This document shows, piece after piece, positions 20,361 through 27,249 of a stretch of 64,000 nucleotides of DNA; the first letter of the stretch is position 1; each line of letters starts with the position of its first letter. The stretch comes from Eutreptiella sp. 'Long Island Sound 2002' (Eukaryota; Protista; Euglenida). The notes under the pieces were generated by a model that was given only the letters and a program-made list of their open reading frames with translations, made no database searches and was not told where the DNA came from. The stretch lies in contig OZ038379.1 of NCBI GenBank assembly GCA_964036045.1, positions 9,052,001-9,116,000 of the forward strand. Reading direction: 5' to 3'. Position numbers and translations under genes: made by a program.

Positions 20361-21944
20361 CTTCATAGGCCTGCATATGCAATAGTGTATGTGTTGTGGT
20401 TGGTGGAATTGTGGTATGCCAAGGAACCCATTCACTAGGGCTCAAGGGTTTTGTGGGGGAGTGGAGGCAAACTCAGTCCTCGGTGTTTTTCACTGGGTTG
20501 CGGCACATCATTGGGTAGATGGGACCTGTAAACAGTCTTCTCAAAACCCCCTTTTCCCATTGTGCTGCAAGTGCTAGAGAGTGCACCCTTGGTACCCATC
20601 ATTGTGATGGGGCCAAACCATCGAATCCAGACTGGAGCCCCCGTCAAGAGCTGCTTCCCGTGAGTTGCACATAAGCACCCTGTCTGAATATGTAATTCTT
20701 GTTTGACCATTGTTCTGCCTATCTTTGGCATGCTTGCCCAAAGGGGAGCCTCCCCTTTGTTGGTGACTAAATTGTGTTAGCATGTGTCCACCCTTGCATG
20801 ATGTGTACAAGCGTAGTAAGTGAGTGAGACTCTGCTCCCATCGACATCTTTTCCCCTGTCTGCAGCTTTTCGACACACCTCACATGCGACCGCCATGGCC
20901 CCAATGTGCAGCCTTCCATCACAGTAATTCCCACGGCCCAAGCCTTGAATTGAAGCTTGTGACCACTGTGAATTGCAGTTTTGCAATTCTTGCCATGACC
21001 AGCACACATGCTGAGTGATAGCATACACATTTGCTTCCCATCAATTGAAGAGTTGGCACTTTTCAACATTTTCATGATTTCTTTTGTTTCATTTTGTTTA
21101 TGTGCACATTGTGGTTGGTGGTTGGCAGGGCTTGGGAAATTGTTGGGCTGGTATGGGAGGGCATTTCTGGGAAAGCGTTGAAAATATTGCTGTTTTGCAC
21201 GCGTTGTGCGAAGGCTCTCCGTCAGTTGTTTGCTGAGTCACACTAATTTGATTGCAATTTGGGTGATTTTTTGCCATGTGTTTGGCCAACACTTTTGTGA
21301 TCATGGGCCACCGTGCATCTAGCCTGCAAGGTACAGCTTTTGCACCACATACCATGTGTACGGACCTTCGTCATGCATTCCACGGGCCATTCCAGTCATT
21401 GTGGTAAAACTCAGAGAGTTGAGTTGAGGAACTCAATTTTTGAGGTCATGCTATGGTGCAGACAAGATTAAAAGTGCCTGCCATTTGGGTGCAGACCCAA
21501 CAGGCAGGGATGGGGATGGCCCCTCTCACAATTACAAATTCCTGCATGAATCCAGAATCCGGAACAACAATATGTTTTGCCCCAGGGCTGGCACTTGAGG
21601 CAACTTTGGGGTAAATCTTGGGAAAGGGGGTGGGTTGGATCAGGTTAAGGGGACTTTAAAACCACCGAGTCATGTCTGGATTGGTGTGGGCACGAACCTT
21701 CTCCAAGCCGCTGAACATGGCAGAACGGGACTGTGGGTTCCTTTGCTACAAGTCATCCAGTTGTTTGACTCTCGTTTGGGAGGTGTTGTGTTGTGAAATG
21801 CTTTACAGTTCAGTCATAATTGTCATATTTGTTTTTGGCTAAGTTTGATGGCATCTCGTGACCGGCCTGAGGTGAAGCCTGCTGCTGCTGCTATGCTACT
21901 GCTGTGCTACTGCTGGTGCTGTGCTGCTGGCTGCTGCGACTGGC

Positions 21945-22009
21945 GGTGGTGGTGGTGGTGGTGGTGGTGGTGGTGGTGGTGGTGGTGGTGGTGGTGGTGG
22001 TGGTGGTGG
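21945..22009. repeat. (GGT)n microsatellite of about 21 units, preceded by degenerate (GCT)n
   Basis: Directly visible; ends about 32 nt upstream of the RAP gene ATG. Confidence 0.95.
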
Positions 22010-22010
22010 A

Positions 22011-22029
22011 TTGCCTCCTGTCTCAATAG
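22011..22029 (+). promoter_or_regulatory. Putative splice (possibly SL trans-splice) acceptor of the RAP gene
   Basis: ttgcctcctgtctcaatAG lies 12 nt upstream of ATG 22042. Confidence 0.4.
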
Positions 22030-22041
22030 CCCATACATGCG

Positions 22042-24321
22042 ATGCTGCGTTGGTTACAGAGGACGCAGCCCTTTTCGAAGGCGTGGCCGACGTCCCCATG
22101 GGCCACTCTCAGCACAAGGGGCATCACAGCCCTCGGTCATACTGCCAAAAGGACTGCGTCCTTCACGGAGCATCGACTGGTCAACAATTGGCCGAGGGGA
22201 GGCGTGCCTGGACGCTGTTACACATGTGCCGGTGTAGCGCACACCGCAGGAACCACCGGCATCGCTTCCGTGTCACGTGCCATGTTCCGTGTCCCGGGGC
22301 CCAAGAGCAGAATTGTGGTACGCCGCATGTTCAGCAGCCGAAAGAAACATGGAGGACGGGGGCGGGATCGGGGCCGCGGCCACACACCAACAACAGCAGA
22401 ACGATCGCCAGGACGGCCGCAGCGGAAGGTGCAGTCCGGTGATGCCGTGGGGCATGAGGAGTTTATGGCGATGTGTGCGGAGGTGGAAAGGGGGGCCGCG
22501 GGATACACGCCCTCTGAACTGCTGGCAATAGTTCGGGAAATGGCAGATCTTTGCGCGCGTAGGAGTGACTTCCGGAGGCTCATTATGGAACCCACAAATG
22601 AAACGGTGCCTGCGTTGAGGCGTCGTGTCTCTGATCCGGAAGTGCTGGGGGCTCTCGAAGGGCGACAGGCAGCGCTGCTACTGCACGCATTCAGTAAGAT
22701 GCGAGTGCGCGATGAGGTGGTGGTGCATGGGATCGCACAACGGCTGCTTCGGCGGGACATTATGCAGAACCTCAACGGCCACGATATCTCCATGACCTGC
22801 TGGGCCTTGGCCAAGGTAGACATGCCGCACCCGGAGCTGATGGAGGCGCTTGCAACACGTGTGACGGATGACCGTATGATTGAACAGCTCTCGGAGCAAA
22901 GTGTGGCCAACATTGTATGGGCATTCGCGAAATTGGGTGTACATAATGCGGACCTGATGGCTGCAGTCGCACGCCGGCTACTGCACGACGACGTGTTGGC
23001 CACGTTCAATGAACAGGGCATTGCCAACACTGTGTGGGCCTTCGCCACATTGGGTGAACAGGATGCGGACCTGATGGCTGCAGTCGCACGCCGGCTATTG
23101 CACGACGACGTGTTGGCCACGTTCAATGAACAGGGCATTGCCAACACTGTGTGGGCCTTCGCCACATTGGGTGTACATAATGCGGACCTGATGGCTGCAG
23201 TGGCACGACGGTTATCACACGATGACGTGTTGGCCACGTTCAAGGCACAGGGCATTGCCAACACTGTGTGGGCCTTCGCCACATTGGGTGTACATAATGC
23301 GGACCTGATGGCTGCAGTTGCACGACGGTTATCACACGATGACGTGTTGGCCACGTTTAAGGCACAGGACATTGGCAACACTGTGTGGGCCTTCGCCACA
23401 TTGGGTGTACATAATGCGGACCTGATGGCTGCAGTCGCACGCCGGCTGTTGCACGACAACATGTTGGCCACGTTCAAGGCACAGGACATTGGCAACACTG
23501 TGTGGGCCTTCGCCACATTGGGTGTACATAATGCGGACCTGATGGCTGCAGTCGCACGCCGGCTGTTGCACGACAACGTGTTGGCCACGTTCAAGGCACA
23601 GGAGATTGCCAACACTGTGTGGGCCTTCGCCACATTGGGTGTACATAATGCGGACCTGATGGCTGCAGTGGCACGACGGTTATCACACGATGACGTGTTG
23701 GCCACGTTCAAGGCACAGGAGATTGCCAACACTGTGTGGGCCTTCGCCACATTGGGTGTACATAATGCGGACCTGATGGCTGCAGTCGCACGCCGGCTAC
23801 TGCACGACGATGTGTTGGCCACGTTCAGGGCACAGGACATTGCCAACACTGTGTGGGCCTTCGCCACATTGGGTGTACATAATGCGGACCTGATGGCTGC
23901 AGTCGCACGCCGGCTATTGCATGACAACGTGTTGGCCACGTTCAAGGCACAGGAGATTGCCAACACTGTGTGGGCCTTCGCCACATTGGGTGTACATAAT
24001 GTGGACCTGATGGCTGCAGTCGCACGACGGTTATCACACGATGCCGTGTTGGCCACGTTCAATGAACAGAACATTGCCAACACTGTGTGGGCCTTCGCCA
24101 CATTGGGTGTACATAATGCGGACCTGATGGCTGCAGTCACACGCCGGCTACTGCACGACGATGTGTTGGCCACGTTCAAGGCACAGAACATTGCCAACAC
24201 GTTGTGGAGTTTTGCTGTATTTGACAGTTTGCACGACGGCATCATCACCCGCCTTCTTGACCGTGCGTTTGCGGATACTGAGATACCCATGTGTCCGCCT
24301 GCACTGTGTCAATTGCATCAG
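22042..24321 (+). CDS. Helical-repeat (OPR/HPR/FASTK-like) RAP-domain protein, exon 1 (760 codons)
   Basis: Arg/Ser/Thr-rich, acid-poor N-terminus (mitochondrial presequence-like), 2-3 degenerate plus 11 near-identical xxQxIANTVWAFATLG repeats, and donor CAG|gtacgt at 24322. Confidence 0.9.
22933..24219 (+). repeat. Coding tandem array, 11 x 117 bp (39 aa)
   Basis: Unit LGVHNADLMAAVARRL(L/S)HD(D/N)VLATF(N/K/R)(E/A)Q(G/D/E/N)I(A/G)NTVWAFAT with a measured period of 117 nt. Confidence 0.97.
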
Positions 24322-24851
24322 GTACGTTGTTATGAGTTTGGGTGCGTTCCTGTTGAATGCCTTGATAGCTCGCTGGGGGCGGGGGGCGGGCTGCCGCGGT
24401 GTCGGTAACACTGATATTGTTCACCGGTTGCTGCAAACGTGGTCAAAGCACCCAGCTACTTACTATTTGTGGCCAAGTGCTTTGCCATAAGGAAGACAAA
24501 ACAAGGCAGAGTGTCGCATCTCTGGGAGCCGTAGAGAAGTAGAAGTTAGGGCAGCCTTTGAGGCTCGACGTGCCCTTCATGATGTGGAAGTACGCGCAGT
24601 GATGTGGCTTTGACAGAGTGTCATCCAAAGTCGTTAGTTTGGGAAGCGGCTTCGGGTGGGGAACAGGGGTAGTTAAGTCTGTGAACAGAACGTCTGATGT
24701 CAGAAAGTAGCGTGTGAAATTCCGATCTTTTTGATCGTTGCTTTGCCGTTAGATCGACACAATTCGCAGGAAGGTAATGCCACACACAGCCTCTCCAAAC
24801 TACTCATCGCCGCTGAAATTTTGGCCCTCATTCGCTCACGTTTCTCTTCAG

Positions 24852-25301
24852 GTCCTTCTGCACGTGGCATTGCACAAGCAGGAGCTTCCGCTCAGCAACA
24901 AAGCGCTTCTGGGCCTGGGCCCCTTCGTTGAGAAGTGCGCCAGGCATTTTACAGAGGCCTCACAACGTGCGGCTCCTTCGCGGCTGCAGAGGTCTGTGGC
25001 CGCGGTGCTCCGGCAGATGAACGTGAAGTTTGTTGAAGAGGTCGTGTTGTCTGACGCTGGGGGGTACAGTGCGGACATTCTGCTGCAGAAGCGGCGCGTT
25101 GTTGTGGAGGTGGACGGCCCATCACATTTTGTGCAGGGCCCCGGGGGCTTTGCGGCTTCGGGGGCGACGTTGTTGAAGCGACGGCAGCTGCAGTGCTTTG
25201 GGTACGACGTTGTGTCTGTGCCGTTCTGGGAGTGGTACGGAATGGCAAAGGCAAAACGGCGGAGGTACCTGCGGGGGCTGGGCCTCGGGGATACACCATG
25301 A
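24852..25301 (+). CDS. RAP-domain protein exon 2 (RAP domain). Spliced product about 909 aa
   Basis: tttctcttcag|GTC, phase 0. Contains RAP hallmarks YSADILL..RRVVVEVDGPSHF, TLLKRRQLQCFGYDVVSVPFWEW. Confidence 0.9.
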   Translation, partial: VLLHVALHKQELPLSNKALLGLGPFVEKCARHFTEASQRAAPSRLQRSVAAVLRQMNVKFVEEVVLSDAGGYSADILLQKRRVVVEVDGPSHFVQGPGGFAASGATLLKRRQLQCFGYDVVSVPFWEWYGMAKAKRRRYLRGLGLGDTP

Positions 25302-27249
25302 CATTGACCGTTGGGGCTGCCAGGGACAGGGGAGTGTGCGGGTGGAATGGTGCTGATGTCAGTGATAGGTCGTTGGGAAAAGCGATGAGGGGACCTTAAA
25401 GTGCCTTAATGGGCAGTGCCGTCGTGCTGAGGCGGTAACCGGGACCCCAGCCCCTCTGTCTACCCCCCCCCCCCCTCTTCAGGGGGCCAAAACATTTGGG
25501 GGATGTCGGTGTCGGGGTCGCCCCCCATGCTTGACACTTGGGCTGATCATATGCAGTTTGACCCATCCTCACCTTTGGGGAATCTGTGCACTGCATGTGC
25601 ACTGCGCACTACGTCTAGACCGTACCCCCTGATTTTGCAATCGTTTTTCGCCCAATCGAACGCCACATCAAAGTCGCAAAGTCACGTGCACTTCCATGTC
25701 CTTTCATCGGCGCTTCGTCTCCGTTTCCGGTTGTTGTTGACGGTGCACTGTCTTGGCTTCATTGTGTGTTCTAGATTGCCCTTGTGTCCACCCTGGGTGC
25801 TGGCGTGTGCGTGCATGGGCCCATACTTTGCTGGTTCAGTTCCTGGAGGAAGGTTTTCCCAGACAAACCAGTTTCAGTCACCTTCCCACTACTTCCTCCT
25901 GAGGCACATGGCTATGACCTCATGGAGCCGCTCTGCCAGGGCACAGGCAGACAACAATGTGTCAACTGCAACTGTTCTGATATCCTAGCGATTCATTCAT
26001 CATGCCTTTTGTTGTATTTGCACCGCTCTTCATTGATATCATCATTATTGTTCATAAATGAGGCTGCCGGCTGCATCGTTATATTCGTCTGTATTTTGCC
26101 TCCCATGCCTCCCGTTTCAGATTTTTCTTTGACTTTCTTCGTTTCAGCACTTTTTTGACTGCTGGGAAAGAGATGACACGACCCAAAAAAGAACATGCAG
26201 TCTTTGACTGAAAGGCTGGTGGGGAGGGGGGGGGATTGTCTACTTCAACAAGGATCTGTAGCACTGTGCCGGCGCTCGCCCTTTGTGGTACCCGAGACTT
26301 GAGCCCCACGTCGCTTGTTATCTGCGTCACTGCTCTCCATCTGTAGCCCCACCCGCAGCCAGTCCTTCCTCCGTCGCCTCTGCCCTTGCCCCCACTACAG
26401 TCGCTGCTTCCCTCAGGCACAGGCGCTGCACAGATCCTCAGGCAGGCGCAGGACACAAGACTTCACTTACCATGCCCACCTCCCCCATCTGCCGCCCCAT
26501 CACAGCAACACCAGAGCAGAGGTGTAGTGTAATGGCTGCACACCTCCGCTGTTGATCCGTTGCCGGGCATATGTGCCAGATGAAGAAGCTGTGTGTGCAA
26601 CTCCGATGGGGCCGTTGCAACATCGATAATTAACATGCACACAAAAGGACTGCGATTGGACACTGGAAAGATACGGACGAGGTGGCGGAGGTAGTCACTG
26701 CAATGATCCAATTCGGCAGGGCGATGCAGCCAATGCACACAGTCCCCCTGCACAGGAGGGAATCCGAACAGCAGTGCCCACCTGCCAATGCATCCAGCCC
26801 ACAGCTCCAAGACCAAGGGGCAGGCATGCGGATAGGCAGTAATGTTGGGATGGACAGTCGTGCCATTGTGGTGCCGTGTGCAGTGCCAAGGCGTCGTCAA
26901 TCACAATTAGTTGGCTGCAGGCACTTTCGATGAGATCAAGCCTTGAAATCGCATTATTGCCTGGAGGGTTCGGGTTGTGGAGGATTTTTGGGAAGTCCAG
27001 ATTTGCAGGCCCTCCTCTCTTGTCCGGGAAGATGTTGGCCAGACTTTCTAATGCAATTCAAGGTCGAGCTTTACTCACTGGTACGTTGAATTTCCAGTCC
27101 TACATGGTCCGGAGCATGTGTCTTCTGATATGTGTATTTTTTTTTGTGGCAAACGCATGTAGCAAAAAAAATCGCCATGTTGTGTAACTTGTTTTTTTTT
27201 TTGGCGGTAAGTCGTGTAAACTCGTACTCGCATTGCCGCAGGTAAAAAT

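Follow-up and report, generated by a model that had tools for sequence, protein, structure and literature searches.

Does the array of near-identical repeats encoded at this euglenid locus read RNA in a modular fashion, and if so, which of its residues would set the specificity? The question arises from a window of 64,000 nucleotides (nt), the whole stretch of DNA analyzed here, taken from the genome of Eutreptiella sp. 'Long Island Sound 2002' (contig OZ038379.1, positions 9,052,001 to 9,116,000; assembly GCA_964036045.1). Positions given below without a contig name are those of the window, and (+) denotes its forward strand. On the basis of sequence comparisons, predicted folds, and analogy with known systems, we favor, with a probability of about 0.62, the reading that the locus is an OPR-RAP gene, whose product would be an organellar RNA-binding solenoid that is diversifying at positions 35 and 38 of its repeat unit and carries a RAP domain as a putative effector.

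Tandem Repeats Finder detected a repeat with a period of 117 bp at 22906 to 24207 (11.1 copies; 92% matches; zero indels), in frame with a 788-codon open reading frame (ORF) at 22042 to 24408 (+). Cutting this stretch in frame yielded 11 near-identical units of 117 bp, or 39 amino acids (aa), at 22906 to 24192 (+), the number that an earlier note on this DNA had reported. Two degenerate 39-aa units precede the near-identical ones (22672 to 22905, +), and these are orthologous one to one among the paralogs, with 2 to 6 nt differences per 117 nt. With one more degenerate unit at the end (24193 to 24309), the total is 14 units at a strict 39-aa spacing. Of the 117 nucleotide columns of the near-identical units, 31 are variable, and any two units differ by 2 to 16 nt. 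The F-xx-Q-x series of the earlier note was reproduced exactly from units 1 to 11 (NEQG, NEQG, KAQG, KAQD, KAQD, KAQE, KAQE, RAQD, KAQE, NEQN, and KAQN), as were its additional L/S, D/N, and A/G switches. In unit numbering, the residues at positions 35 and 38 are thus NG, NG, KG, KD, KD, KE, KE, RD, KE, NN, and KN, and the further switches fall at position 26 (L/S), position 29 (D/N/A), and position 1 (A/G). Units 3, 4, 7, and 10 have in common a block made up of S26 and linked synonymous changes at codons 21, 23, 25, and 28, and units 5, 6, and 9 share a second block (N29). Given this blockwise sharing, part of the variation among units does not represent independent site-by-site change.

The repeats form part of exon 1 (22042 to 24321, +; 760 codons), which extends from an ATG to a GT donor. 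Both the ATG and the ensuing MLRWLQR... are conserved in the close paralogs. The exon is followed by a 530-nt GT-AG intron (24322 to 24851, +) and by exon 2 (24852 to 25301, +; 149 codons and TGA), which encodes a helical linker resembling FAST_2 together with the RAP domain. The junctions read ...CAG/GTACGT at 24321/24322 and ...TCTTCAG/GTC at 24851/24852, while the unspliced ORF runs into a stop at 24408. Splicing preserves the frame and joins ...QLHQ to VLLHV..., which corresponds to the consensus L.QL.Q..L of unspliced homologs of the family. The donor GT and the acceptor AG are both kept in two close paralogs (L002 and L003), from which the intron has diverged by 6.2 to 6.4%. We conclude from these features that the locus is an intact two-exon nuclear gene, as far as its sequence tells. 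The earlier note had described the repeats as fused to a RAP domain; the domain is real (PF08373; 25104 to 25274, +; detected by Pfam, by the genome scan, by alignment, and in the predicted fold), but it resides in the second exon and is joined to the repeats by splicing across the intron. Exons 1 and 2 were searched and folded separately.

The Pfam search of the window protein returned DUF1601 (E value, 1.9e-23), FAST_1 (1.2e-16), and RAP (PF08373; 1.4e-11), the last with 44.7 bits against a gathering cutoff of 24.2 (46.9 bits in the genome scan), and contained no PPR or TALE match. The terminal degenerate unit and the start of a FAST-like region (24193 to 24321, +; best FAST_1 stretch, residues 679 to 743) close exon 1, which ends in ...QLHQ directly before the donor. 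A word-based protein search gathered 423 relatives with the same domains (PF26188, PF26172, FAST_1, DUF1601, and RAP), which belong to euglenids, green algae, diatoms, haptophytes, pelagophytes, and dinoflagellates. Among solved structures, Trypanosoma brucei RESC6/MRB3010 (PDB 8fn4 and 8fni; E value, 2.8e-21 over approximately 390 residues) was the best sequence match, followed by Chlamydomonas mL115 (3.5e-12). In the AlphaFold2 model of exon 1 residues 141 to 760 (41 homologs; mean predicted local distance difference test [pLDDT] score, 95.7), the protein is a continuous all-helical solenoid with a helical N-terminal cap (22462 to 22671, +; pLDDT of >90). Each unit in the model comprises helix A (positions 36 to 39 and 1 to 9), helix B (15 to 25), and a short four-residue helix C (28 to 31). 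Foldseek ranked RESC6 (E value, 2.7e-14) and other RESC subunits first, then helical-repeat proteins of the Toxoplasma gondii mitoribosome, mL115, and, more distantly, PPR10.

With respect to its class, the unit length of 39 aa that the earlier note had singled out was confirmed; it is not new, as it falls within the published OPR range of 38 to 40 aa (PMC8635915), and arrays of homologs have units of 37 to 40 aa. The predicted antiparallel helices are stacked as an alpha-solenoid, with mL115 among the fold matches. The OPR core F-x-x-Q ... N-x-x-W/L-A-x-A-K/T-L, for which a Paulinella motif is quoted in PMC7729196, is present as F34-x-A-Q37 together with N2-T-V-W5-A-F-A-T-L-G, and the family consensus agrees with it. 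The PPPEW motif is absent from the unit: by our own reading of the OPR consensus, it would follow WAFATLG, where the window units have V-H-N-A-D-L-M. This motif is reported to be missing from approximately one-quarter of OPR units and from CCS2, which has LWALAR instead, and it is thus typical rather than obligatory. The period of 39 aa departs from the 37-aa unit of HPR proteins, which bears on the label only, since the OPR class is taken to include HPR proteins (PMC13126933). The window protein is homologous to RESC6/MRB3010 but belongs to a set of at least 60 divergent paralogs and does not qualify as its ortholog, and PPR10, a distant fold match, is the only link to PPR proteins, whose families were not among the Pfam matches.

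The alpha/beta core of the exon-2 model (pLDDT, 83) is that of RAP domains. The fold matches of this model were mitoribosomal RAP proteins of T. gondii and Tetrahymena, the PD-(D/E)XK homing endonuclease I-Bth0305I, Vsr, and human FASTKD4, although the FAST1-FAST2-RAP module of FASTKD4 was a weak match (probability, 0.97; E value, 0.18). FAST_2 was not reported by Pfam, for which the region straddles the intron and the two exons were searched separately. In a 27-sequence RAP alignment, no invariant or near-invariant column is lost in the window protein, with Y..D, E-V-D-G-P-x-H-F, and G-x-T-L-L-K-R-R among those kept, and the conserved acidic, lysine, and histidine residues expected of a PD-(D/E)XK-like fold are present (D75, E86, D88, G89, P90, H92, and K109 among the conserved residues in exon-2 numbering). 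The architecture is a variable N terminus followed by OPR-type repeats, a FAST-like region, and RAP, an order known from the OPR-RAP proteins of Chlamydomonas and Paulinella and from FASTK proteins (PMC8635915, PMC7729196, PMC13126933). Judged from the Pfam profiles, the RESC6 and mL115 matches, and the Foldseek results, the window protein is a member of the OPR/HPR/FASTK-like helical-repeat family that terminates in a RAP domain of PD-(D/E)XK-like fold, as the earlier note had surmised; proteins of this class bind RNAs of organelles and process or stabilize them. Human FASTK and FASTKD1 to FASTKD5 resemble it in the FAST_1 match and the PD-(D/E)XK-type RAP domain and have roles in mitochondrial RNA processing (PMC12242768, PMC5449608); unlike the window protein, the vertebrate proteins have N-terminal domains that are not regular 39-aa arrays.

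Searched in six frames with the repeat region, the genome gave at least 129 matches in approximately 61 loci, as grouped by position, from 90 scored of 556 first-look candidates; the RAP domain alone gave 35 genome matches. The loci of the repeat family are often clustered (contigs C2, C12, C5, C20, C13, and C14), their arrays consist of 10 to 26 units, and open frames of 700 to 1,300 codons are intact in >25 of them. The unique 5' flank of the window gene matched six other places, all on contig C2, which correspond to five close paralogs (L002, L003, L005, L006, and L009) and one weak match. These paralogs have the same unit consensus and approximately 10 to 24 near-identical units, and the duplicated segment shared with L002 and L003 spans approximately 21656 to 25440. 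The longest array among those examined was that of L006 (C2:190133066-190137139), with 24 near-identical units (26 with the degenerate N-terminal pair), a recurring pattern of 3 to 5 units, and several units that are 100% identical. L009 (C2:10037697-10041662) has a 1,084-codon frame with three successive higher-order modules, each composed of two degenerate N-terminal units and 4 to 6 near-identical ones, which indicates that duplication acts on multiunit blocks as well. The locus documents a large euglenid expansion of an OPR-RAP-type family, of which the searched literature has only a handful of "MRB3010-like" proteins; beyond these, OPR-type repeats in Euglena were not described in it.

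Across the paralogs, variation is concentrated at the same few positions of the unit; the comparison that the earlier note had named as a possible refutation speaks for its reading here. Among the 88 units of six C2 paralogs, the entropy was highest at position 38 (2.12 bits), followed by positions 35 (1.65), 29 (1.27), and 25, 26, and 30 (approximately 1.06 each), and 11 positions were invariant. Five further subfamilies with other consensus sequences (C12 L014/L030, C5 L020, C2 L007/L008, L015, and L023) each had position 38 as the most variable (1.8 to 2.4 bits). Position 35 was within the top six in 5 of the 6 subfamilies, and positions 35 and 29 were often among the next few. The residues found at position 38 in 180 units were mainly N (60), E (37), G (36), and D (31), and those at position 35 were mainly N (89) and K (69), with an association between the two positions (chi-square P = 6e-5).

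The dN/dS ratio (nonsynonymous to synonymous divergence) of the arrays between paralogs is confounded, and it was replaced by three measures: the nonsynonymous diversity (piN) per codon relative to the mean synonymous diversity (piS) of the array, the divergence of the intron as a neutral yardstick, and unit pairs with only one residue different between them. In addition, MAFFT alignment of whole paralogous loci placed the arrays out of register, and ungapped comparisons slot by slot and unit by unit were used instead. The ratio of piN at position 38 to the mean array piS was 3.9, 3.5, 12.1, 3.0, 4.5, and 4.4 in the six subfamilies and ranked first every time. In each subfamily, piN was 0 at 9 to 31 repeat positions while synonymous sites varied, and the invariant residues V21, D28, and F34 lie on codons of high synonymous diversity (piS, 0.5 to 0.8), a pattern which indicates a scaffold under purifying selection. 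Of 66 unit pairs that differed at one residue, 15 differed at position 38 and 9 at position 35, where approximately 1.7 would be expected at each; the two positions combined thus account for 24 of the 66 pairs, compared with approximately 3.4 expected. Between the window gene and L002, dN was 0.30 at positions 35 and 38 and 0.031 at the non-hot-spot positions of the repeat, with an intron divergence of 0.064.

The two principal hot spots flank an invariant (A/P)Q at the N terminus of helix A, and the secondary ones are the pairs 25/26 and 29/30. In the model, position 35 immediately precedes helix A, and position 38 lies in the first turn of this helix, between the near-invariant polar residues Q37 and N2/T3; by helical periodicity, it would share one face with N2 and T3. 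Positions 25/26 and 29/30 are on the connector from helix B to helix C, and all of the hot spots lie within the contiguous stretch from 25 to 38. This placement resembles the location of the specificity residues of PPR proteins. Homogenized arrays with periods of 37, 38, or 39 aa were also found in haptophyte, diatom, and metagenomic homologs (P0115, P0028, P0004, P0030, P0102, and P0032). The most variable residues of these homologs from other phyla are the same two sites flanking a conserved PQ, so the pattern belongs to the repeat family and not to Euglena alone.

The arrays themselves are in turnover. The central units of the window gene are 2 to 3 nt from neighbors in the same array compared with 4 to 12 nt from the same-slot unit of a paralog, and nearest-neighbor assignments of units between paralogs are only partly collinear. 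The flanks, the intron, and exon 2 are mostly 93 to 99% identical between paralogs (approximately 81 to 83% in one indel-bearing part of the intron), and the array is 91 to 95% identical. This is the signature of arrays that, once the genes had duplicated, went on being reshaped by gene conversion or unequal crossing-over, and the greater closeness of units within an array than between paralogs bears out the recent amplification that the earlier note had suggested.

The favored reading can be formulated as follows. After entry of the protein into an organelle, which would more likely be the mitochondrion than the plastid, the solenoid may use one of its surfaces to bind single-stranded RNA. 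The sequence that is bound may be tuned by residues 35 and 38 of each unit in turn, and the RAP domain may cleave the bound transcript or anchor it. Repeat shuffling together with diversifying selection at positions 35 and 38 would then generate paralogs with new specificities, as in the NCL (NCC1-like) cluster of Chlamydomonas (Boulouis et al. 2015, as relayed in PMC8635915 and PMC13126933). In NCL proteins, which are OPR-RAP proteins, single substitutions are reported to create new RNA targets, redirecting the proteins to new transcripts that are then destabilized (PMC8635915). The NCL cluster is similar to the family described here in its OPR repeats with a C-terminal RAP domain and in its clustered recent paralogs with a highly conserved repeat region (here on C2, C12, C5, and C20). 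It differs in that it belongs to green algae and not to Euglenozoa, the best green-algal matches to the window protein being approximately 30% identical, and in that the window repeats are near-identical within one protein and have no PPPEW.

A bolder version of this reading, which we put forward only tentatively and by analogy, is that RNA is read in the manner of a TALE. One unit would address one nucleotide, the base would be set by residue 38 (N, E, G, or D) under the influence of residue 35 (N or K), crossing-over would shuffle the units, and RAP would convert binding into cleavage or stabilization. Given that the same hypervariable pair occurs in haptophyte and diatom homologs, such a code, if true, would be general to OPR/HPR/FASTK-like repeats. 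The array has the layout of TALE proteins, that is, near-identical tandem repeats with variation in one or two positions, but this is a resemblance of design and implies no homology, nor is binding to DNA expected. TALE repeats have 33 to 35 aa and bind DNA, and PPR repeats have 35 aa and two helices; the likeness to both is by analogy only, as helical-repeat arrays with few variable positions on a conserved scaffold. The small mitochondrial genome of Euglena would limit the target space for decoding such a code computationally.

Several observations weigh against the favored reading. Outside the array, the window gene and its close paralogs differ by 16 nonsynonymous and 3 synonymous changes in the N terminus and by 6 and 3, respectively, in exon 2, all of which are small counts but speak for weak constraint on these young copies. 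Slotwise dS in the array was 0.12 compared with 0.02 to 0.04 in the flanks; unit shuffling thus inflates synonymous divergence in the array, and piN/piS there is not a clean dN/dS. The paralog L003 (C2:8851108-8855511) has an in-frame 81-bp deletion, equivalent to approximately 25085 to 25165, that removes the RAP core including E-V-D-G-P-S-H-F. The remainder of this gene is open, making it a natural RAP-dead copy, and the same product is encoded in an ENA contig (P0122). Another locus, L018 (C18:30878533-30882945), contains one TGA and six TAG stops within the match and is probably a pseudogene. No close protein derived from a transcript was found, the best Euglena transcripts being 33 to 41% identical and the RAP exon matching genome-derived ORFs only. 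The exact 788-aa ORF was likewise not found in the protein collection, which is uninformative either way. Finally, RESC6, the closest solved relative, is mainly a scaffold that also contacts RNA (PMC12687428).

This last point leads to an alternative in which the protein serves, within a protein or ribonucleoprotein complex of an organelle, as a scaffold or other structural subunit, comparable to mitoribosomal OPR/HPR proteins, RESC6, or ASA2 of the Polytomella ATP synthase; there would be no base code, and the variable residues would be the most tolerant part of the surface. The best structural matches are indeed subunits of complexes (RESC6, mitoribosomal proteins of T. gondii and Chlamydomonas, and the Polytomella ATP-synthase chain 6rd4_2), and RESC6 uses both of its surfaces as a scaffold (PMC12687428). 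It is of the same phylum and the same repeat type as the window protein and is annotated as a RAP-domain protein. However, RESC6 has degenerate repeats, is single-copy, and takes part in uridine insertion/deletion editing, whereas the window protein has 11 homogenized repeats and belongs to a large expanding family; such editing is absent from Euglena (PMC7403612). Apicomplexan HPR and RAP proteins and the mitoribosomal OPR proteins mL115 and mL123 of Chlamydomonas and Polytomella likewise have an alpha-solenoid followed by RAP, bind fragmented mitochondrial rRNAs, and are stable constituents of the ribosome. HPR units, unlike those of the window protein, are approximately 37 aa long and highly degenerate, and they have no defined hypervariable code positions (PMC12691811). 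Stoichiometric subunits are usually single-copy and conserved, in contrast to at least 60 loci with 10 to 26 repeats and fast turnover. Moreover, the piN/piS ratio at position 38 is 3 to 12 rather than approximately 1 in the six subfamilies, and its alphabet is restricted to the polar residues N, E, G, and D, which fits selection for diversity better than tolerance. We therefore regard the scaffold alternative as unlikely.

Rather less likely still is an action of the protein in the plastid instead of the mitochondrion, as is the case for most characterized Chlamydomonas OPR proteins. The N-terminal 140 residues (22042 to 22461, +) are basic and rich in Ser, Thr, Ala, and Gly and probably consist of a mitochondrial presequence and a low-complexity RG-rich linker. 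The first 40 residues include 6 basic and 0 acidic ones, and the sequence is free of acidic residues through residue 43. Its start, MLRWLQR..., resembles the mitochondrial presequences of euglenozoans. Plastid import in Euglena requires an N-terminal segment resembling a signal peptide, and no such hydrophobic segment was found in the first 140 residues (maximum 15-residue Kyte-Doolittle mean, 0.85). On the side of the plastid stand the intron-rich plastid genome of Euglena and the predominance of chloroplast factors among characterized OPR proteins (PMC8635915). On the side of the mitochondrion, one MRB3010 (RESC6) homolog and eight similar proteins have been reported or predicted in Euglena gracilis mitochondria (PMC7403612), placing RESC6-like proteins in the mitochondrial fraction. 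Among the supplementary entries of that study that were covered, EG_transcript_7315 is the sole MRB3010, and the three best EG_transcript matches to the window protein are not among the entries. Taken together, the suggestion of mitochondrial targeting in the earlier note is consistent with the basic, acid-free N terminus without a signal peptide and with these MRB3010-like proteins, and the mitochondrion is the more likely organelle.

Also improbable, in our judgment, is that the window gene is a young copy, functionally redundant or in decay, within a cluster of segmental duplications, and that mutation with unequal crossing-over and gene conversion produced the array pattern while no selection for new specificities was acting. 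A nonsynonymous-to-synonymous ratio of approximately 1 or higher outside the array (on small counts), the truncated L003 and the interrupted L018, the central units that are nearer within the array than between paralogs, and the lack of a matching transcript among the Euglena transcript and protein searches would all fit such decay. Against it, the paralogs have diverged by approximately 5% in DNA over 792 codons, yet their frames are open and free of indels. Positions that are invariant in the protein, such as codons 21, 28, and 34, vary synonymously, and independent subfamilies, like the homologs of other phyla, have the same two hot spots, a recurrence that neutral decay would not yield.

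The weakest alternative, that the array is an assembly artifact with collapsed or expanded repeats, has in its favor that near-identical 117-bp units are difficult to assemble but is highly improbable, since the array is merely 1.3 kb long, its units bear ordered and distinguishable variants, six paralogs repeat the design at differing copy numbers, and an identical array is present in a second public contig record. This record (ENA ERZ25074135, ctg10473) is base identical to the window over the first 10,000 compared bases, including the whole gene and all 11 repeats, and it differs by a 1-bp indel at approximately 29776 while being otherwise identical over 10.5 kb; it is thus not simply the same record. 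The match argues against a one-off assembly error, although both may stem from the same reads.

Directly upstream of the start codon are CTG-rich and (TGG)23 microsatellites (21879 to 22009, +), which have other lengths in L002 and L003. These microsatellites are read through by the open frame of L003 and by that of L009, which yields poly-G, poly-V, or poly-L stretches. An AG behind a pyrimidine-rich stretch (22028 to 22029, +), 12 nt before the ATG and kept in the paralogs, is a candidate acceptor for the spliced leader or for 3' splicing. In the 2.28-Gb assembly, the E. gracilis spliced leader is represented by 5,458 occurrences of its 24-nt core, compared with 0 for the reversed control; this frequency, with Euglena transcriptome entries as the best outside protein matches, marks the genome as Euglena-like. 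Its occurrences are dispersed over the chromosomes (e.g., L033 and L034 on C1), far beyond what genes for spliced-leader RNA would need. An antisense ORF of 690 aa (22218 to 24290, -) was rejected as a gene; it is a by-product of the repeat unit being free of stops in that frame.

In algae, apicomplexan parasites, and animals, the processing of mitochondrial and plastid RNAs is controlled by OPR, HPR, and FASTK-like repeat proteins. According to recent reviews, the code by which these proteins recognize RNA has yet to be deciphered (PMC8635915, PMC12691811), and the searched literature did not define specificity positions for OPR or HPR repeats. The highly degenerate repeats of most members have blocked the comparative route by which the PPR and TALE codes were solved. 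The kind of protein described here is already known; its practical value, and promise, is a near-isogenic natural series of repeats, present in at least 60 loci and in several phyla, whose sequences point to two candidate specificity residues. A near-constant scaffold in which change is focused on these two residues offers a concrete hypothesis for the seat of specificity, and the arrays supply a consensus scaffold that is usable for binding assays. A TALE-like code, if true, would be readable from the near-isogenic arrays and could be used for designer RNA binders.

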